Positions 49,965-60,664 are shown, counted from the whole stretch's first letter. The stretch: 60,664 nucleotides of DNA, filler included, from Trichosphaerium sp. ATCC 40318 (GCA_038496445.1; 4 parts of 4 records of this genome joined end to end with filler, not necessarily neighbours in it); one strand, 5' to 3'. A program made the numbers and translations. Notes: a model not told the origin generated them from the letters alone.

Positions 49965-52900
49965 GGAGTTTTCAGCACTCTTCTGCCTCTTCTTTGTTTC
50001 CTTGGTGGCAAATCAGCTCTCTCTACCAGTTGTTCAGTTATGATTTCTTCTTCTCCTCCTTCTTCTTCTTCATCATCATCACTTTCTTCTTCTTTACCTT
50101 TCTTATTATCTTCCTCCTCCTCTTCTTTGCTCTCTTCATCATCTTCACTCAACTGGGTCAAATCTATTTTACCAGCTACAAAAAAAAACTCCAAGTAAGT
50201 CATGTGAAGTTTGCGTAAAAAATGCTATATTTCGAACAGGAAAAATACGTGTCGGCGACCGACCGCGAGCTCGCGGTCACGTTCGAACACAGAAAATGTG
50301 TGTTAAAAAATCGGCGAAAGGAAAAAATTAATATAAAACTTGCCTTTGATCAAGGTGTCACCAGACTTTGATTCAGGATCAATAACCAAGGTGAGGTGCA
50401 ATCTTCCATCCACTTTTTTAATCAAAGTAGGCATAGACAACAATTGGAGCATCTCTTCAGTCTTTGCCTTGTAAAATTTTTGCAACAACCCCTTTCTCAA
50501 AGCCAAACTTCTTCTCCTCTTGGTTCTTGGAGTTAGAGGTTGAGTGGATTGAGAGCCATATTGAGAGGAAGAGGCAGCAGGCTTCTCAGAAGAAGATTCA
50601 CCATTGTTGGATGGTGCAAGTGCTAAGTAAGAACAACATGAGTACTGAGTTATGTCAAAAACAAAAAAAAACAAAAAAAAAAAAACCCTCCGAGCTATTT
50701 TTCAACAGGTAAAACGCGTGTCGGAAACTGACCGCGAGCTTGCGGTCTAATGCGAACACGGAAAATATGTGTTTGCATTTAACGTACCTCGTTTTAGTCT
50801 CTGACTGCTTCTTGTGGTCATCTTTGTTGGTCCTGACCTTTTATTTACATCACGTTTTGATGTAGAAGGCTGTGGTTTATCAGAATCTAAATAACATCAA
50901 CTGGTACATTGGTTTATGAAGAAAAAAAAAAAAATGAAAAAAAAAAGAAAGGAAAAACCAACACATCGCGATCGTGTTCGTACCGAGTACGATCGGTCTG
51001 TGAGTTACTACACTTTCAAACCAAGGCTCACTTGATTTTTTGAACAACCCATGTGCTCTGCTGCTTCTTCTTGGTCTTTTTTGCAGCTGGATTTCTTCTG
51101 AAACCTCATCCTCATCACCATCCTCACATCCTCATCTTCTTTTTTCTTCAAAATCTTCTTCTTCATCTGATGTAGGAGGAGTTGTTTTAACCATAGGCTT
51201 CTTTTTCTTGCCTTTGCCTTTACCTTTTTTTTTATGCCTGTTTATGGCACTGCCTTCACTTGCCCTTGCATTGGCAGTGTTCTTGGCCCTTGTATCTCTA
51301 AAAGGTAAGTAGGCATTCTCCAACATGGCTTCTAACTGAGGAGCTACAAAGGACATTAGTTTAAAAAGTAAACTAGGGAGAGAAAAAAAAAAAAAAAAAG
51401 AAAAAGAAAAGAGTACGACCGCTACGTTCGACGAACAGGCGATTCGCGTGTAGCACCGAGCGCGACATTGGATGTATAGTGTAAAAAAAAAAATGGCACT
51501 TACTTGCTTCTTCCACCTCAGGCAAATCCAAGCACTGCATAGACAACAGAGCAGTGTGAGAGAAGGAGAGCACATCTGCTGCTTGCTTGTACTTCATTTC
51601 TTCTATAACCATTTTGGGCAATTTTTGGCCATCTTCTGTGGTGCCGGTCCAAAGCAAGTGCAGGTCGTACATCAAAAGCTGGCGAAATATACACGGACGC
51701 AGGCTGTTCGCGAAATTCACGTGCTCCTCCTCGGTGCTCGTGTCCCACGAGAGCTCGTACCAACCGAGCTCGTTCAGCTGTTTCAAGGCCTCGAGTTAAA
51801 GTTAGATGACGGTGGAGGGAGAAGAAGAAAAAAAAAAACAACAAAAAAAAAAAACTGACCGATTGGTTTTTTTTTTTTTTTGTACCTGTGTGATATATTG
51901 GCTGCAGTTCTTGTACCTCTGCAAATAATAGGATTGATTGGTCTCATGATGATACACCCTGCAGGTCAGTGCCTTGACAAACTAAATGTACAAGTTTAGA
52001 CACAAACCCTTTTTTCAAAAAAACAATATAAAAGGTACTTGACTTACTGCTATTCTGGCATGGAGAGGTAACTCTGCCCATGCAGCATGAGCCAATATTC
52101 TAGTCCTGTAGCCCACTGGATGTTTGGTGTGTGCTATGATGAGAGTGTGAGTGAATGGCGAAACTTTGTACGACACACAAAATGCGTGTTCGAATCCGAC
52201 CGCGAGCTCGCGGTCCGTACTTCGACACGTGAAATGCGTGTTCTAATAAAGACGAAAGCCTACGTACCACATTTTCAGCAGATGCAACCAATTCTGCTAT
52301 CAGAGCACTGTCCAATGGCTCAAAAAACATGCCAGCCTTAACAAACTGCTTGCTTTCTTTCCAGTTGGTCACATATGGAAAGTATAGATTCATCTTAACC
52401 AAAAACTAAACAAAACAATCAGTTATAACATACAAATAAAAAAAAAACAAACTAAAAATCGTCGGTTTTACAACAGAGTATTTTAATGTTCGCACGTGAC
52501 CGCGAGCTCGCGGTACGATATACGACACGCGAAACCTCTGTTTAAAAATACTTGCGAAAAAAAAAAAAAAAAAAAAAAAGATTAAAATAAAAAAAAAAAC
52601 AACCCTCACCTCTTTCCATTGAGCAGGACTGAGCTGAGGTTTGACTCTGCTGGCTCCCCATATCGCAAAATTCACCTTACCTATATCTCCCGCCTCCGCT
52701 TGGTAATCGAAGACCTGGCCCGCGTCGTCGCACCACATCTTGAACAGGTGGCGGTAGCGATCCACCTTGGAGTCTGGAGTGGTCAGACTTTGCAGAAAGT
52801 TGATCTTGGTGCAGTAGATCGCTATCGCTTGCATCTTGGCGAAAGGATTTATCCACTCCACATTTTTGATTGCAAATTTGCAGGTTGTAGCTGCATTTTG

Positions 52901-53462
52901 TCTGAGGCAAACAAGTAAGAAACAATTGAACAATAAGGTAAGGAAAAGCAAAAAACCAGAAAAACAAAAAACAAAAAAAAGGTTCGTCGTTCGAGTTATT
53001 TTTTACAACAGGAAAATCTCGTGTTCGAACGTGACCGCGAGCTCGCGGTCGGTCGACCGACACGTAAAAAACGTGTTCGAAAATATTCGCGAACGTACGC
53101 CAACTCTGTCAAAAGACAGTGTGCTCCATCTCCAACTCCAAAGCCAACAATAGGGTCTGCATTGTACTCATCACACCAAACAATAGGCATAGGACAAAGC
53201 ACAAACCTTTTGGTGAAGGTTTCATAAATAGGCATCTTTTGTATAATGTTCCTGGGGTTGACTCCTCTGACATTCAAAAAACAAGCTATGTGTGACATGT
53301 CCAAGGGGCCTTTGTAAAATGAGGGCTTTTCACTCTCAGATACTTCTTGTTGATAGAGTTGGCAGCAATCCCTCTTAACAGGCCCTTTTGTATTGATGGC
53401 TTTATGATGCAGCCATTCAATTTATTGGTGCCTGTCTTCATGTAGCTACATAAAAGTTAAAA

Positions 53463-53518
<56 letters not shown>

Positions 53519-54151
53519 GACGACGTTCGTTTTCGAACACGTAGAACGCGTGTTAAAAATATCGCGAAAATTGTTACTTACTCCACAAAGAGATGGAAAT
53601 CTGAATCATTGCCAAAGCTCAAGGAATCTCTAAAATGGACCAAAAGAAGGGCAATGTAGTACCAAGAATCTGTGACATGAAGTCCCATGGCTGTGTAGAA
53701 TATGCCAGTCCAGAGTAGCACCTGCCAATACAACTGTCTCCACTTGCAGCTTATAATCCATCTATTTTTCTTTCTCCTCTACCTCCGATTCCTCATCTCC
53801 GTGTTCTCTCGGCATGGGTTCGTGCTCCTTGTAATCTCTGGTGTAGTTGCCTTCGAAGTGCATCGGCTTCCACCACTTTTCTTCGTCCGAGGAGTAGATT
53901 TTTCTGACGTCTTTGATAAACTTCTGCAGTTGGTCTACTCCTTCAACAAATGGAAATCTCTCCTAAAGAAACAAATTAATTTAAAAAAAAAACAAAAAAA
54001 AAAAAAACCAAAAAGCCAACGATTTTACAACAGGATATTTAAGTGTTCGTACACGACCGCGAGCTCGCGGTCACACGTTCGACACATGAAAACTGTGTTA
54101 TGAATACTTTAGGAAAAAAAATCAAAAAATAATCAAAAAAAAAAAAATCAG

Positions 54152-54191
<40 letters not shown>

Positions 54192-55645
54192 GAAATAAAA
54201 CGAACACGGCCCGCGCGTGTATGTATCGGAAAACGTACCTTGAATGCTGCCTTCAGCTTGTTGTTAGGAGTTATTTGAGACTCCAACACATTATCAAAGC
54301 TGGCAGCAAAAAACCCATTTAGGCATCTCTTCATCCTCTTGATGGGCATGGTTTTAGCATAAACCAACTGGTTGGCTATGATAACACCTCTACATAGATA
54401 AATTAGTTGAAATGAATTAAAAATTAAAAAAAAAACAAAAAATAAAAAAAAAATATAAATGACAGCTACGTTTACGAACATGCGCCGCGCGTGTTGCGTC
54501 GAACGCGAAATTAAATGGGTAAAAAAAAAAAAAAAAAAACACCCAACTTACTCAAAACCAAAGATAACATCTCTGTGTTCTCCAATGAGAGTACCCACAA
54601 TTTTTGTTTCAGTGTTGTGGTTTCCATGGGTACTCACAATCATCCAACCAGGGCTTGTTGGAGCTAAAAAGAGTATTAGAAGATGGCACATTAAATAAAT
54701 ATACAAACACGTTTTTTTCTGTGTGGAAAATATGACCTCGAGCTCGCGGTCGGAAACGAACACATTAAAAACGTGTTACGTACACAACGGCAAGCTTGCA
54801 GTCAGTTATAAAGCAAGACTTTCAAAAAAAAAAACGGTTTTTAAAAAGTACACACTTTTTATGTGTACAAAAACCGACCGCGAGCTCGAGGTCAGGTACG
54901 AACACAATAAACATGTGTTGTATACCATAAAGCAAGCTTGCAGTCAGTTATAAAGCAAGACTTTTAAAAAAAAACGGTTTTTAAAAAAGTACACACTTTT
55001 TATGTGTACGAAAACCGACCGCGAGCTCGAGGTCATGTACGAACACGGTAAAAGCGTGTTTAAAGTCGTACAGCGAGCTCGCAGTCTGTAAAAAAAGCAA
55101 AACAACAAAAAAAATATTAAAAAAAAAGTACACAATTAAATTGTGTACCAAAACCAACCGCCAACTAGCGCGACATGCGAACACGCGATATACGTGTTCT
55201 AATACCGCGACGAGCTCGCTGTTGAAAATTGAAGCAAAATAAAACAGTGTGAACCAAAACCAAACGAAAAAACAACGCACACGCGTTCTGCGTGTTACGA
55301 AACCCTCGTTTGGGTTTGGTTCTACCATGCAAAAAAACCGCATGGTAACGGAAAAATCGTACACATGAAAACCGTGTACAAAAACCGTCATTTTTTTTCG
55401 AAATTTATTTGAAAAATTAGGGGTTTTGAAAAAACCATTTAAAAGCAAAAAAACCCCCTTTATTAGTCTTTAAAAATTAAAATAAGACTAATAAAGGGGG
55501 TTTTAAAAAAAACAAAGAGTAAAAAAGAGGTTAGTACCTAGTACTCTCTTCTCCTGAGCCTGGGCTTACCATCAGCTTCTTTGGAGGGCTCATCCTCATC
55601 AGAAAACTCAATGTTTATGAGAGAGAGGTCTTCATCTGAGCTCAT
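49965..55645 (-). CDS. Large unknown multi-exon protein with a central ParB-like motif pattern and acidic/basic tail; one in-frame TAA, 3' end in gap
   Basis: At least 13 GT-AG-bounded exons, e.g. MSSDEDLSLINIEF, APTSPGWMIVSTHG, ERFPFVEGVDQL, FLNVRGVNPRNIIQ...VGDGAHCLLTELA, AIYCTKINFLQSLTTPDSKVDRY, LKQLNELGWYEL. TAA near 53424; shifts at A-runs. Confidence 0.65.
54791..55090. repeat. ~142-bp tandem duplication of the motif cassette in intron 1
   Basis: CAAGCTTGCAGTCAGTTATAAAGCAAGACTTT... starts at 54791 and 54933; main palindromes are spaced 142 and 141 bp. Confidence 0.85.
55450..55504. repeat. Perfect 21-bp inverted repeat with 13-nt loop
   Basis: AAAACCCCCTTTATTAGTCTT (55450-55470) / AAGACTAATAAAGGGGGTTTT (55484-55504). 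Confidence 0.9.
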
Positions 55646-55961
55646 CCTTGATTTATGAAAAGTCAAAAAAGTAAAATGAGGCTTTTTTTCCCCCAATAAT
55701 TGCGTTGAGAAATAGACAGGAAAATTTCGTGTTTCGAAATGTGCACCGGAAATTTCGCCTGTTTTAAAAAAGTAAGAAAAAAATGAGAATTTGACAGTTT
55801 GCAAGATTGTTGATGAGGTCTTGGGTTTGTAAAAAACCCTATCTTGCTGTAACCCTACAGGGAGATTGTATGTGCAAAAAACATAAAAAAAAGCCAAAAA
55901 AATCGAAAAAATTTTACAACAGGGTAGAGTAGTGTACAAAAAAATACGGTTGGTACATACT

Positions 55962-56101
55962 CCTAAACCCTAACCCTAAACCCTAACCTAGTTTACAAAC
56001 CCTAATGTTCGGTGAAAACCCTAGTATCACTGAAATAGGGTTTTGTACACTAGGGCTTAGGGGTTTAAACCCTAGTGTTCGCTGATTCTCGTTCAGCGAA
56101 C
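55962..56101. repeat. Telomere-like CCCTAA(A) units followed by a 9-bp stem-loop
   Basis: CCTAAACCCTAACCCTAAACCCTAACCTAG, more AACCCTA/TAGGGTT motifs, then GTTCGCTGA-N7-TCAGCGAAC. Confidence 0.6.
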
Positions 56102-58092
56102 CAACTACCAAAAAAGGCAAGTCTTGCTCATTAAGCAAAAATATACACTAAATATTAAAAAACTTAGTACTTCTACAAAAACACCTCATAACTATACACC
56201 AAGGTAATATATATAACTCATACTTTATACACAATAAATTAAGGCATATTGACATAAGATACATCAAGCGCTACATGTATGATGATATACATGGTGAGTA
56301 ATCAAAGCAACCCTAATGGATAAAACTATAAAATGGAAAAAATTATTTATTTGCTATCACTACTAAATACCATGATCATTTAGAACCAAATCATTGTTAT
56401 TTCTATGTAGCTACAATATAATACTTTATAAAAATATATTGTATGATAACATAGATGATATTAAAACTGTTATTTATATCATTTTTTAGTACAAATAGCA
56501 TTTTTGTATGTTGACATTGAGAAAAAACCTTTATTTTAGCACTAAGATGATATATTCTTGAATAAAAAGTATGTTATATATCTAATAATCAAATATAAAA
56601 ACAATTATGTATGTAATTTTAACATAGGTGGCCTTGATAGGCCTATATACCACAAAAAAAAATAAAAAAGCTATAATTCTCAATAAAACATCTGTGTCGC
56701 TGCATTAAAAACATCTATTGTATTCATGTTTCACAAGTCATCAACCACCATGCTTGAGATCATGTATGTGCAATAGATTGCACATATATGATATAAGTCC
56801 AACAAAATAGATGAATTACAAAAACACACACCAAAAAAATTATTGGCACTATAAAAAGCTCTATGCCAATATAATTTTACATCCATGATAACATTCCTAA
56901 ATGGATAGAAAGTAGCCATATAACAAAGATATATGGCATCAAGAGGTACCATGGAGGCAAAGCTGTTTTTGGCAAAAATGACATTTTTTTGGTTTTTTTA
57001 CCATAAAGTATGATTGTAGGTAGCTTCATCAAGATCATCTATGTATATATAGTAAATTATAAGATGATGCCATGATGTTTGTTAATAGGAAAATGAAGAA
57101 TCGCACACCATAGATAATATATGGGGGGCCTGGTGCATCAACGAACAATGTCATCATTTTTGGCCAAAAAGGGCACGAACTCAAAATGCTTCTAAGCCTT
57201 CAAATCCAACCATCATTTTTGTTTTTATATAGGCTTATATAAAGTATATTAAGATGGCATAACATTTAAAGTAAATATTCATAGGGGGTATGGTGAACGA
57301 CCACTAAAAAATGAAAAAATGCTGGAAATTTCTACATTTTCCTGATTTTGGATCGCATATATCCCACCCCACCAAATAAACTGTATACCTCTTATTATTG
57401 CTATGCTAGGTACTATATATCCTCAGTCGCCATCGATCCATCATGTTGTTGGCTGTGACCATTTTCGAAAACATGTGCTATAAAAGGTAAAACATATAAA
57501 TGAACTAATAACTATTCATGATGCATAGGTATGACAAAATAGATAAATGCATTGGATTCCTTGAACAAAATGGCATACATGTATATGTATAAGTGAAACA
57601 TAGGTGGTCGTGTAACTGCAGCCTCCAAGCAAAAATGTATCCAATTTTTTGCTAAAAAAATCCCATTGGAAAAATCAAAAAAAATCCAAAAATCAAAGAA
57701 TGGCTCACCAAATCGACGTATACTGCTATAAAATCCTACAAACCATCAGCAATCGGGTAATTTATGCCAATGTATAAGGTACAAAAAACGAAATTGGCTT
57801 AAGTGATATGATAAGGTATGCGGTAATGCATGGTTCAAATTAAATCCCTAATCCTACCTCAATAGTAGTAAATCGTAAGCTTGTAAGGAAAAAAATACAC
57901 AATGTCAACACAACCCTAGCATAATTTTATGCACGTATTTAATGCTACATAGCATAGGATGAAGCGCCATATTAATTCAGGCACGAAAATGCCTTTGGCA
58001 TTTCCGCACCTACCCGCGATAGCCCGTACGGGGCGATATTCGGTGAACGAAAATCACATAGTCCCTAACCCTAACCACTTCCTTAATGTGAT

Positions 58093-58449
58093 CAGTCCTG
58101 TGATATAGTATAGGCAATGCCTTATATATGAATTAAAATACAAGGCATATATTGCTTAAAAAAATAAGGCATAATAAAGGCATAAAGTACTTGCAATATG
58201 GGGCATTACTTGATTTTATGCAATGCCAAAAAATGCAATACAAGGCATTACCTGATTTTATGCAATGCCAAAAGATGCCCAAAAATGCCTGGTATTAATG
58301 CCTTTTTGATGAAGGCATTGCCTTTTTGTAAAAATGCCTTATTTTATTGGGCATTGCCAAATGCAAATGCCTTGATTTTGCCATCTAATGCCAAATGTTA
58401 GGAATATGCATCATTTTTTAAGACAATGCCTAGCTGAGTTTCAGCCCTG
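58093..58449. mobile_element. Possible short non-autonomous element with AGGCATT/AATGCC repeats
   Basis: Imperfect ends CAGTCCTG...TAGGCAATG and CAATGCCTAG...CAGCCCTG; dense GGCAT/ATGCC repeats in both orientations; no TSD found. Confidence 0.4.
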
Positions 58450-60092
58450 ACTCGGTCGTAAATTCAATCCAGATTTCACTAATTTCATTCCCAGTTATTA
58501 GAAGAATAACTTTTATCAATCTGTTTTCTGGCAAGTATGCAGACATGAATGATGAAGCTTTTGATAAAGTTGGTTTTAACATTGCTCGTTTGTTAAACAC
58601 TTCGATGCATGTTGCAAACAATTTTTACAACATTTTCAATTCTAGAGAACAGGATTTGTACGACTTATTATTTTAACTTACAATATCTAAATCAGGTCTA
58701 AAAAAATATACCAGTTTTTTTGGTATATACCACTTTTATACCACTTTTTTATACCAGTTTTTCATGGTATATACCACTCTTATATACCACTTTATGCCTA
58801 CTTATGGTACACCTGCAATTCCAGAAAATACACTTTATTTAATACACAGTTTGTGAGTTACAAGTTTTGGACAATGTCCACTACAGTTACATTACTATGG
58901 GCGTCTGGAAAATTCGTCCATCTCCATGAGCTTGCTGTACCTACTGTAAAAACATGCTGCGCACCTAATGAAAGTGGTTCCACCTGAATCTATCAATTAC
59001 TAAGGCCTACAGAGGTCGGTTAATGTATATCAAACGAAAATAAAATAACACTTTGTCTGGTACCCACGAACGTCTGTATAATACCTGCAATATAGTTTCC
59101 TTAATGGTGGTACTGGAATCAGGTCCTGCGGTTTGAATGAGCTTGGTTTGGTTAGATTCTATCATATACTAAGGTCCCTATGCACCGTTCAATGTATGAC
59201 GTCTATGATCGTTCAACAAGAAAACCCATTACCAAAAAGCTCCTTAATGACCTTCTTGAAGCATACCATAAAAGTGGTATATACCAATAAAAAGGTGGTA
59301 CCACATACCATAAAAAAGTGGTATATACCACCTTATATACCATTTTTAGAAGGTCTCATTATGTGAATGAAAAGTGGTATATACCACTTCCATATACCAC
59401 TTTTTTATTCACTTAATTTCTAAAAAAAGTGGTATTTCAAAATGGTATATACCAGTTCATATACCATTTTGTTGAAAAAAGTGGTATATACCATAAAAAA
59501 ACTGGTATATACCACTTTAATTTTTAGACCTGATACATGATTTTAGAGTCACTCAACAAATGATTAATGAATGTATTCTTCCTGTTGAACATGAAGCTCC
59601 ATTAATGTTGCAACAAATAGTGCAAGCTACCATAGATGATTTGCCAATGATCAATGAAGAAGTGATAACTAGACGTATCAGGGTGTTGAAACATCTTCGT
59701 AAAGAATTGCCTTTACCCGAAGACAGGTATACTTTTTATGAACCTGACATTGTATCAAGTTCAGATGAAGAAGAATTTGTTGACATTGTGGAAATCCAAT
59801 CCAACAATGCAAGTTATGACAGCGATGATTATTTGAGTGTAGATTCAAACATTGAATTGGATGTATATTTCAGTGATGAAGAATGTACGATTGAATTAAA
59901 ACTTATTATTTATTAATCTCTTTTACAGCCAAGTATGACTTGATCGATATGTATGTGTCTAAGGAAAATGAAATTATTTGTGTTGTGCAAATGGATGATG
60001 ATCACGATGAAGAAAAGTGGACTTTACAACAAGCTTTAAAAAGAAATGTTGTGGTAGATAGTTTCTTAAAAACTATTTTACCAAAAAAATAA
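58450..60092 (+). CDS. Hypothetical 3-exon gene or gene fragment; first intron contains a MITE
   Basis: The frame is kept across GT-AG junctions: ...NSREQDL/VTQQMINEC...FSDEES/KYDLIDMY...ILPKK*. The 5' end abuts the putative element ending at 58449. Confidence 0.5.
58693..59532. mobile_element. MITE with CAGGTCTAAAAA TIRs and subterminal TGGTATATACCA palindromes
   Basis: CAGGTCTAAAAA ... TTTTTAGACCTG, flanked by AT on both sides; many GGTATATACC / ATACCAC repeats near both ends. Confidence 0.8.
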
Positions 60093-60664
60093 AAAATTAT
60101 CTTAGTTACCAATAAAAGATTATCTTATATTTCATAGTCATGAATAGATATGAAAATAAATAATATCTCATTATGTTGCCATGTATGTATAAATATGAAT
60201 TTAAATTACAATTTAGCTACACATGATATACTAAAAACTTTGTGTATATGAGAAGTGTGCATACATATTTTTTACCAAAAAAAAAAACCAATTACAAACT
60301 CAAAATCGCTTACATTTATATAACTCATCACTATAGATACCTACAAATCAATTATTGCTTGTACCATGTTTATATGGTCTAATAACATATATGTACATAC
60401 ATAAAGTAATTAAAAATACATTTGTAAATGCAGCCTCCAAATGCAACTGCATGGTAAAAATATCTCAAAATTTGCAAAAAAAAAAAGTTCATGTGTCACT
60501 CACGGGCCATGTAGTGCATGAATATCATTTTCGATGCTGCACATCATAATAATACATGCCTGTGCCTAACAGCACAGCCATGAAAGTAGCAAAATCTAAT
60601 AAAATCGAAAAAGTAAAAGTTTAAGTAACCTTAACCCTAATTGTTATCATAATCTATTAGGGCT

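Follow-up and report, generated by a model that had tools for sequence, protein, structure and literature searches.

Why should most introns of one gene carry copies of the same composite palindrome at almost invariant spacing? This question arose from a 60,664-nucleotide (nt) stretch of DNA (here called the window) from Trichosphaerium sp. ATCC 40318 (GCA_038496445.1), in which four parts of the genome are joined end to end with filler. We analyzed the 10.7 kb from 49965 to 60664, a piece that is clearly eukaryotic and AT-rich (25 to 44% G+C in 500-nt intervals), contains introns of 60 to 280 nt, and gives no hint of being human. Its minus-strand gene of unknown function (49965 to 55645) carries, in its introns, cassettes made of two short dyads around a central core palindrome, and its 5′ flank carries partial elements. 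A first-pass annotation of this DNA had attributed the cassettes to selection for the binding of dimeric proteins in fixed geometry and had suggested a selfish element that coats itself with its own protein. We found that the repeat has been multiplied within the locus, by copying from intron to intron and by tandem duplication, and that what is constrained in it is sequence identity, not folding. Our tentative reading is that the constant parts of this locally amplified repeat are putative dimer sites on duplex DNA, kept by selection in a lineage-specific and probably selfish locus.

The smallest part of the repeat is the dyad, ACA-N11-TGT, which occurs 32 times between 49965 and 55936 and once in the adjoining 4.7-kb flank (55937 to 60664). 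Shuffles of the region that preserved dinucleotide composition (n = 500) gave 2.29 ± 1.43 copies with a maximum of 8, bearing out the earlier estimate of about 30 dyads against about 2 expected, and the alternative spacings N8, N10, N12, N13, and N15 gave one to three matches. Under the gene model described below, introns account for 26 of the 32; another 4 are found upstream of the ATG and the remaining 2 are exonic. All dyads that had been listed individually were recovered, whether single in introns (50961, 51435, 53537, 54204, and 54478), within an exon (about 51691), or upstream of the ATG (55716, 55857, and 55919), as was one dyad with an N12 loop (54707). The core is a perfect 18-nt palindrome, GACCGCGAGCTCGCGGTC, which is present with 0 or 1 mismatch at every one of the nine positions previously reported for it (50261, 50730, 52198, 52498, 53033, 54055, 54734, 54876, and 55017), with a further copy at 55069 that has three mismatches. 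Shuffled sequences contained no core, and the core, which the first-pass annotation had not seen elsewhere in the window, was also absent from the 4.7-kb flank. Counted as element instances, at least 14 lie in the 5.7 kb of the locus and none in the flank, which holds another intron-bearing gene.

A strict pattern for the full cassette (dyad, 8 or 9 nt, 18-nt palindrome, 8 or 9 nt, dyad) was matched exactly nine times. All nine cassettes belong to the minus-strand gene; the ranges given here begin at their plus-strand starts. Single cassettes lie in intron 15 (50236 to 50303, core 50261 to 50278), intron 14 (50705 to 50772, core 50730 to 50747, with one CpG transition), intron 9 (52173 to 52241, core 52198 to 52215), and intron 3 (54030 to 54098, core 54055 to 54072). 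The cassette of intron 8 (52473 to 52541, core 52498 to 52515) has outer arms (ACAGAG/CTCTGT) that pair with each other and not inside each dyad, and that of intron 7 (53008 to 53076, core 53033 to 53050) has its inner segment inverted relative to the cassette at 50236. The other three (54707 to 54776, 54850 to 54918, and 54991 to 55059) lie in a tandem array in intron 1. As the first-pass annotation had it, spacer length is conserved: spacers measure 8 or 9 nt in all nine cassettes, so that dyad centers are 51 to 52 bp apart, with the core center 25.5 to 26.5 bp from each. We infer that these distances correspond to about five and two-and-a-half helical turns. The accompanying claim that spacer sequences vary freely did not stand, since spacers always begin with (T)CG next to the dyad, and the spacers of cassettes 50261 and 53033 are near-identical when one cassette is reverse-complemented.

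Nor does the repeat stop at the unit of about 69 bp first assigned to it. On the gene strand it runs from a TCGCGA-type box through the first dyad, the core between its two spacers, and the second dyad to a T run; the second dyad often ends in CCTGTTGTAAAA, which is followed by a short CG-rich stretch before the T run, and the extended form of the dyad is CGAACAC(G), a T-rich loop, and (C)GTGTTCG. The whole cassette is an imperfect palindrome and in this sense has terminal inverted repeats. When ten introns were aligned, mean column identity was 37%, and only the cassette and its adjoining boxes aligned. Cassettes lie 15 to 68 nt from the 5′ splice site, and four of the cassette-bearing introns start with GTACGT. 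The T runs appear as A runs on the plus strand, and we rejected the idea that they are poly-A tails of retroposons because, read along the gene, they consist of T and come after each element, and so act as polypyrimidine tracts. Two of these runs, 59 nt (53459 to 53517) and about 80 nt (54114 to 54200) long, are unbroken or nearly so; they lie between elements and 3′ splice sites and are far longer than a polypyrimidine tract needs to be.

In intron 1 the copies form a tandem array, which Tandem Repeats Finder (TRF) and an alignment of three units define at 54734 to 55086 on the minus strand. It comprises 2.3 to 2.5 units of 141 to 142 bp with 84 to 86% matches by TRF (about 14 to 18% diverged), and each unit has a decayed core and then an intact one, both followed by a dyad, with a T run at the end. 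Upstream, a degenerate part of the array continues from 55130 to 55377, with dyads at 55130, 55181, 55279, and 55361 and a decayed core-like palindrome at about 55205 to 55222; a 17-bp inverted repeat (55251 to 55267 and 55306 to 55322) encloses the dyad at 55279. Near the 5′ end of the same intron, a 13-nt loop separates the arms of a perfect inverted repeat of 21 bp (55450 to 55504) that is unrelated in sequence to the cassettes; its weak, subthreshold Rfam matches to bacterial antisense and pseudoknot families are surely spurious.

Shorter forms of the repeat, also on the minus strand, were found by dyad scan and intron alignment. Single dyads occur in intron 2 (54478 to 54494), at the 5′ end of intron 3 (54204 to 54220), in intron 5 (53537 to 53553, with a TCGCGA box on its 5′ side), in intron 12 (51435 to 51451), and in intron 13 (50961 to 50977). 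The single-dyad introns can be aligned with one another, and intron 12 retains half a core (AGCGGTC) after the spacer; judged by their sequences, these derivatives look like cassettes that have lost their center. The gene's 5′ flank (55705 to 55937) contains partial elements, namely a fold-back of two CCTGT-type half dyads (55705 to 55765) and the end motif ACAACAGG with a dyad (55905 to 55937). In addition, the segment made of spacer, core, and spacer is found in both orientations relative to the oriented outer parts: cassettes 50261 and 53033 align with a score of 14.5 when one is flipped and -2.5 when it is not, and an asymmetric core variant (CTCGAG) is flipped between 54734 and 54876/55017. 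The repeat thus undergoes inversion of its inner segment and loss of its center. Inversion between inverted arms and deletion of the center are the usual behavior of palindromes during replication. The earlier statement that this is "not simple copying" was therefore too strong, given homologous copied repeats with a 141- to 142-bp tandem array, common flanking boxes, and deletion derivatives. We saw no target-site duplications (TSDs) of the cassettes' own, a feature that the first-pass annotation had set against its interpretation: none of the 15 junctions has a repeat beyond the obligatory AG/GT, although old copies could have lost theirs.

We then asked which parts of the cassettes stay constant among these diverged copies. 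Dyad invariance was scored by anchoring on the cores, so that the dyads themselves were not selected for. The ACA and TGT triplets were invariant in all 18 core-anchored dyads and the 18-nt core showed 0 or 1 change, while arm positions 4 to 6, loops, and spacers varied among cassettes. In eight independent cassettes, 29 of 32 CpGs were kept in the core (with one transition), compared to 14 of 32 in the ACACG/CGTGT dyad arms, where ten had changed to TG or CA (Fisher's exact test, p = 1.2e-4). Among the three tandem units of intron 1, 9 of 11 noncore CpG sites had a transition in at least one unit, compared to 0 of 4 sites in the primary core (p = 0.011). CpG decay does operate in this intron, as the secondary cores have changed from GACTGCGAGCTCGCTGTA to GACTGCAAGCTTGC. 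A core search at three mismatches returned one intermediate only, indicating that cores are either intact or gone. All of these selection arguments come from nine to about twenty copies at one locus, and the cassettes were found via their cores.

Pairing showed no comparable constraint. Whether the cassette is folded as three hairpins or as one long hairpin, covariation did not exceed that of shuffles (244/500 and 177/500 shuffles, respectively), every core variant breaks a pair, and there is no excess of G-U over A-C. The change from ACACG/CGTGT to ACACA/TGTGT might pass for compensatory; we rejected this because each of the two changes is a CpG transition and they occur together no more often than chance would give. 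Cassettes do fold more stably than shuffles in either form (z = -1.2 to -4.2), but any palindrome does so. The core is self-complementary through its very center (AGCT), which a dimer site on duplex DNA needs and an RNA hairpin does not. Collectively, the constraint falls on identity and spacing and not on pairing, a pattern more in keeping with dimers recognizing duplex DNA than with RNA or single-strand structure. On this account the constrained bases, the fixed spacing, and the broken, uncompensated pairs all favor the earlier proposal of selection for dimeric binding.

The gene that carries the repeat was modeled manually, by six-frame reading and GT/GC-AG sites, after an automatic splice model that had kept intron sequence open was dropped. 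It starts at ATG 55645 and has at least 16 exons, with its 3′ end beyond the edge of the piece at 49965. In order on the minus strand, exons 1 to 6 are 55645-55570, 54663-54552, 54389-54239, 53962-53783, 53721-53582, and 53445-53344; exons 7 to 12 are 53266-53099, 52901-52610, 52405-52268, 52133-52048, 51981-51886, and 51789-51504; and exons 13 to 16 are 51343-51032, 50886-50788, 50622-50344, and 50175-49965. Fourteen introns are GT-AG and one is GC-AG (intron 15, 50343 to 50176, with donor GCAAGT and a normal AG acceptor). Seven of the 15 introns hold full cassettes (three of them in intron 1), four hold a single dyad, and four short ones (61 to 96 nt) hold none. Exon phases are consistent across all junctions except 52268/52133 (exons 9 and 10), where one base is missing or extra. 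Exon 13 contains an in-frame TGA (51134 to 51132), downstream of which three exons are still in phase, and two short gaps, 53782 to 53722 (61 nt) and 53343 to 53267 (77 nt), are either small introns or frame breaks. The TGA, the phase clash, and the two gaps could be real decay or homopolymer assembly errors. The conceptual product has 909 residues, with a globular part of about 640 residues and a charged low-complexity tail.

CpG is partitioned sharply between the elements and the exons. Introns contain 181 CpGs in 2,953 nt, an observed/expected ratio (o/e) of 2.0 at 35% G+C, and all of them are within elements. The exons contain 38, of which thirteen exons (1,970 nt) hold 2; 41 would be expected there at the flank o/e of 0.50 (P ~1e-15), and at an o/e of 0.2 the probability is still 1e-5. 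TpG+CpA is raised in exons (1.36). The other 36 exonic CpGs fall in three patches of 125 to 190 nt, in exons 4 (53783 to 53912), 8 (52660 to 52845), and 12 (51640 to 51775), where G+C at third codon positions is 0.55 to 0.9 and CpG is near normal. The exon 12 patch uses the vocabulary of the cassettes (the dyad at 51691, GTTCGCGAA, and CGAGCTCG) and has 47 7-mers in common with the introns, compared to 24.5 ± 5.7 in shuffles (0 of 300 reached 47); those of exons 8 and 4 do not use it. Because the cassette-less introns 4, 6, and 10 have no CpG at all, CpG tracks the element and not intron status, and we rejected methylation restricted to exons as the cause of the partition. Two accounts would fit: the elements may postdate a thorough purge of the gene driven by methylation, or they may be protected from that purge. 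By hand count, the open reading frame (ORF) of the neighboring gene has ordinary CpG content (o/e of about 0.45).

Searches for relatives, made exon by exon or ORF by ORF, gave no Pfam match on any exon and no PDB match. Exon 8 (97 amino acids [aa]) had no homologue among 1.84 billion representative proteins; its one representative match was a repeat protein, rejected as the sum of weak stretches and not real homology. A homology search with exon 12 found nothing, exact look-up of ten ORFs of the window in a protein collection found none present, and for exon 8, AlphaFold run on the single sequence gave a model of unusable quality (predicted local distance difference test [pLDDT] score of 44.8). 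In metagenomes, the bare 18-nt core matched once in each of at least 120 stretches; among the matches listed, none was below 45% G+C and none had flanking dyads, and we discarded them as chance. Viral contigs gave six core matches, all likewise chance, and no match to exon 8. A literature search for the core sequence found nothing, no Rfam family matched the cassettes, and a tRNA scan found none.

The flank of the gene contains short repeated motifs of other kinds. A second gene, with three exons or more, lies on the plus strand (58430 to 60095) and encodes an acidic, serine-rich protein; its exonic CpG is ordinary, unlike that of the main gene, and its 118-aa ORF had no homologue in a homology search. 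A nonautonomous DNA transposon of about 845 bp (about 58691 to 59535), probably inside an intron of a plus-strand gene, has short terminal inverted repeats (ATCAGGTCTAAAAA and TTTTTAGACCTGAT) and eight exact copies of a 12-bp palindrome, TGGTATATACCA, usually after AAAAG, in both subterminal regions. Clusters of telomere- or telobox-like words (AAACCCTA/TAGGGTTT) lie at 55830 to 56095 (200 to 450 bp upstream of the ATG), 58060 to 58075, and 60630 to 60664; the flank has 11 copies and the gene region 2. Among these clusters are a tandem repeat of 13 bp, CCTAAACCCTAAC (2.1 copies), and several small palindromes of the word, and they may represent promoter elements or small-transposon termini. 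GGCATT/AATGCC, the third family of short inverted motifs here, is dense in both orientations at 58110 to 58400.

Comparison with known systems suggests partial likenesses. The En/Spm element has many copies of 12-bp TnpA motifs inside one element, in both orientations, and TnpA binding is linked to demethylation of the element; known subterminal arrays of DNA transposons lie within a few hundred bp of the element ends. The locus resembles this CACTA system in its many short-motif copies in both orientations, and the neighboring transposon in its TGGTATATACCA array, but here the motifs are spread through introns over 5.7 kb. No CACTA terminal repeats were present in the 5′ flank, and Pfam gave no Transposase_24 or Transposase_21 match and no transposase domain. 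Fold-back elements, palindromic miniature inverted-repeat transposable elements (MITEs), and the GC clusters of AT-rich organelle genomes are GC- and CpG-rich palindromes scattered in AT-rich DNA. Their dynamics of inversion and center deletion are similar to those seen here, whereas our cassettes occupy a nuclear spliceosomal locus with fixed geometry, conserved identity, and copies concentrated in one place. The first-pass comparison with parS arrays, in which a ParB-family protein works with 16-bp sites on a bacterial or plasmid replicon, holds as analogy only, since this is a eukaryotic gene with spliceosomal introns and Pfam found no ParB-like domain.

The VANDAL transposons of Arabidopsis are a further comparison. 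VANC21 sites lie in introns and other noncoding parts of VANDAL21, where CG methylation is lost locally and coding parts are less affected (PMC5735166, PMC10398659). VANDAL motifs also occur between genes, at element ends, and partly in tandem, much as 26 of the 32 dyads here are intronic, 4 lie in the 5′ flank, and intron 1 holds a tandem array; and the local loss of CG methylation there may have a counterpart in CpG that survives only in intronic elements and is purged from exons. VANC motifs are, however, nonpalindromic words of 8 to 9 nt without fixed geometry, in contrast to a three-part palindrome with fixed spacing, and neither Pfam on all exons nor homologue searches detected a VANC-like or MULE protein. 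Introners (PMC9860276, PMC3609843) likewise place a common sequence, with inverted-repeat architecture, in introns at different positions, and the cassettes sit beside the 5′ splice site, followed by a pyrimidine run, in fixed orientation to the gene. They differ in that similarity is confined to a module of about 70 to 130 bp and not the whole intron, there are no TSDs, and introners are defined by their spread across many genes; all copies within the 10.7 kb covered are in one gene, the neighboring gene's introns having none. The symmetrical (stw)introns of Hypoxylaceae (PMC8469720) are highly symmetrical, proliferate without flanking duplications, and have degenerate "cropped" derivatives, as here; they have terminal inverted repeats of 45 to 55 nt that reach the intron ends and a nested intron, in contrast to an internal module of three palindromes whose copies are much more diverged.

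In the reading we favor, copies of a single composite-palindrome repeat have settled in the introns and 5′ flank of a lineage-specific gene, and in these copies the bases around the constant parts (the core, the ACA/TGT triplets, and the spacing) decay, CpGs included. The constant parts would be double-stranded DNA sites for one or more dimeric proteins, with the two dyads about five helical turns apart on one face of the helix and the core halfway between them on the opposite face. The array would belong to a selfish, transposon-like locus and be kept by selection on that element, and the CpG-rich cassettes would be islands spared when methylation stripped CpG from the remainder of the gene. 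Candidate binders are a self-encoded protein, a transposase encoded elsewhere, or a host factor. That the locus is probably selfish is suggested by its orphan product, its long-methylated-looking exons, its disruptions, and the absence of the motif from the flank, and the neighboring transposon indicates that arrays of short palindromic sites do occur in transposons of this genome. The self-coating, anti-silencing idea of the first-pass annotation would be a special case that fits the CpG pattern, since a protein that opposes methylation locally, as VANC21 does, would over time produce such a map; in its full form, an autonomous element whose own product or partner binds the three-part palindromes as dimers and keeps the islands free of methylation in the manner of VANC or TnpA, we consider it quite unlikely. 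Several observations weigh against the favored reading. Pfam recognized no DNA-binding domain on any exon, and the sites are putative. The argument for selection comes from nine copies found through their cores, with the ascertainment bias that this entails; in about ten others the core is decayed or deleted. Constraint may have acted on active source copies before they inserted, rather than here, and CpG richness could simply mark young copies. The TGA and at least one frame break fit ongoing selection poorly, unless they are homopolymer assembly errors. No transposon ends were found, the piece stops short of the gene's 3′ end, metagenome, viral-contig, and protein searches turned up no related locus, and confinement to this gene was seen within 10.7 kb.

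The main competitor is an introner- or MITE-like family, that is, recent or intron-creating insertions of a genome-wide, nonautonomous palindromic element whose core and arms are conserved by the needs of a transposase, which have no role at this locus and whose CpG richness reflects youth. Homology over the whole element with its flanking boxes, the position near the 5′ splice site, the fixed orientation, and the shared GTACGT starts agree with such a family, as do the deletion derivatives and decayed copies, which show that many instances are not maintained, and the short cassette-less introns, CpG-free like the exons, which look like an older layer. There is also precedent, in that inverted-repeat introners are known in many lineages (PMC9860276) and symmetrical introns have proliferated without TSDs in Hypoxylaceae (PMC8469720). 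We nevertheless place it somewhat below the favored reading. No junction has a TSD; with at least 14 instances here and none in the neighboring 4.7 kb, despite an intron-bearing gene, strong local hopping would be required; loops and spacers differ too widely among copies for a recent burst from one master; and cores are intact where dyad-arm CpGs have decayed, the primary core having escaped CpG decay even in the diverged tandem units.

If the cassettes acted instead as RNA, either as intronic hairpins that aid splicing or as a source of small RNAs (a mirtron or hairpin small interfering RNA cluster) that regulates the locus, the common orientation of all copies in transcribed introns and their more stable folding than shuffles would be accounted for, and stable predicted structures are reported for fungal introner-like elements (PMC3609843). 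The pairing results described above run counter to this idea, as does a core that is palindromic through its center. The long hairpin, with 8x8 and 7x7 internal loops, would be a poor Dicer or Drosha substrate; the inner segment is free in orientation; no Rfam family matches; and partial elements also lie upstream of the ATG. We thus judge an RNA role very unlikely. Least probable in our view are host cis-regulatory or chromosomal sites (a cluster of intronic enhancers or insulators, an origin of replication, or a recombination hot spot) bound by a host factor in an ordinary, fast-evolving gene. The evidence of constraint serves this explanation as well as the one we favor, and CpG-rich palindromes resemble sites read by methylation-sensitive factors. 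But 11 of 15 introns repeat one composite site, which has also been tandemly amplified, flipped, and deleted; such a pattern is more typical of repeats than of host enhancers. In addition, the gene has no homologue and carries disruptions.

What the locus means depends on which of these explanations is correct. Were the cassettes a palindromic introner family, intron colonization would be concentrated in one gene, and their flip and deletion dynamics would bear on how elements move without TSDs. Were they maintained binding sites, as we tentatively favor, one could read the grammar of a protein-DNA array in the sequence by itself, with its two kinds of half-site, its spacing exact to the base pair, and its tolerance of a flipped inner segment. 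The CpG map would in turn be a record of which 70-bp islands escaped methylation over evolutionary time, and sequence-specific anti-silencing or self-recognition by transposons would no longer be limited to the few cases known from plants. Under anti-silencing, the system would have a composite palindromic site and lie in a lineage from which no such system is known, and its evolutionary footprint would be retention of CpG at the sites with loss from the exons.

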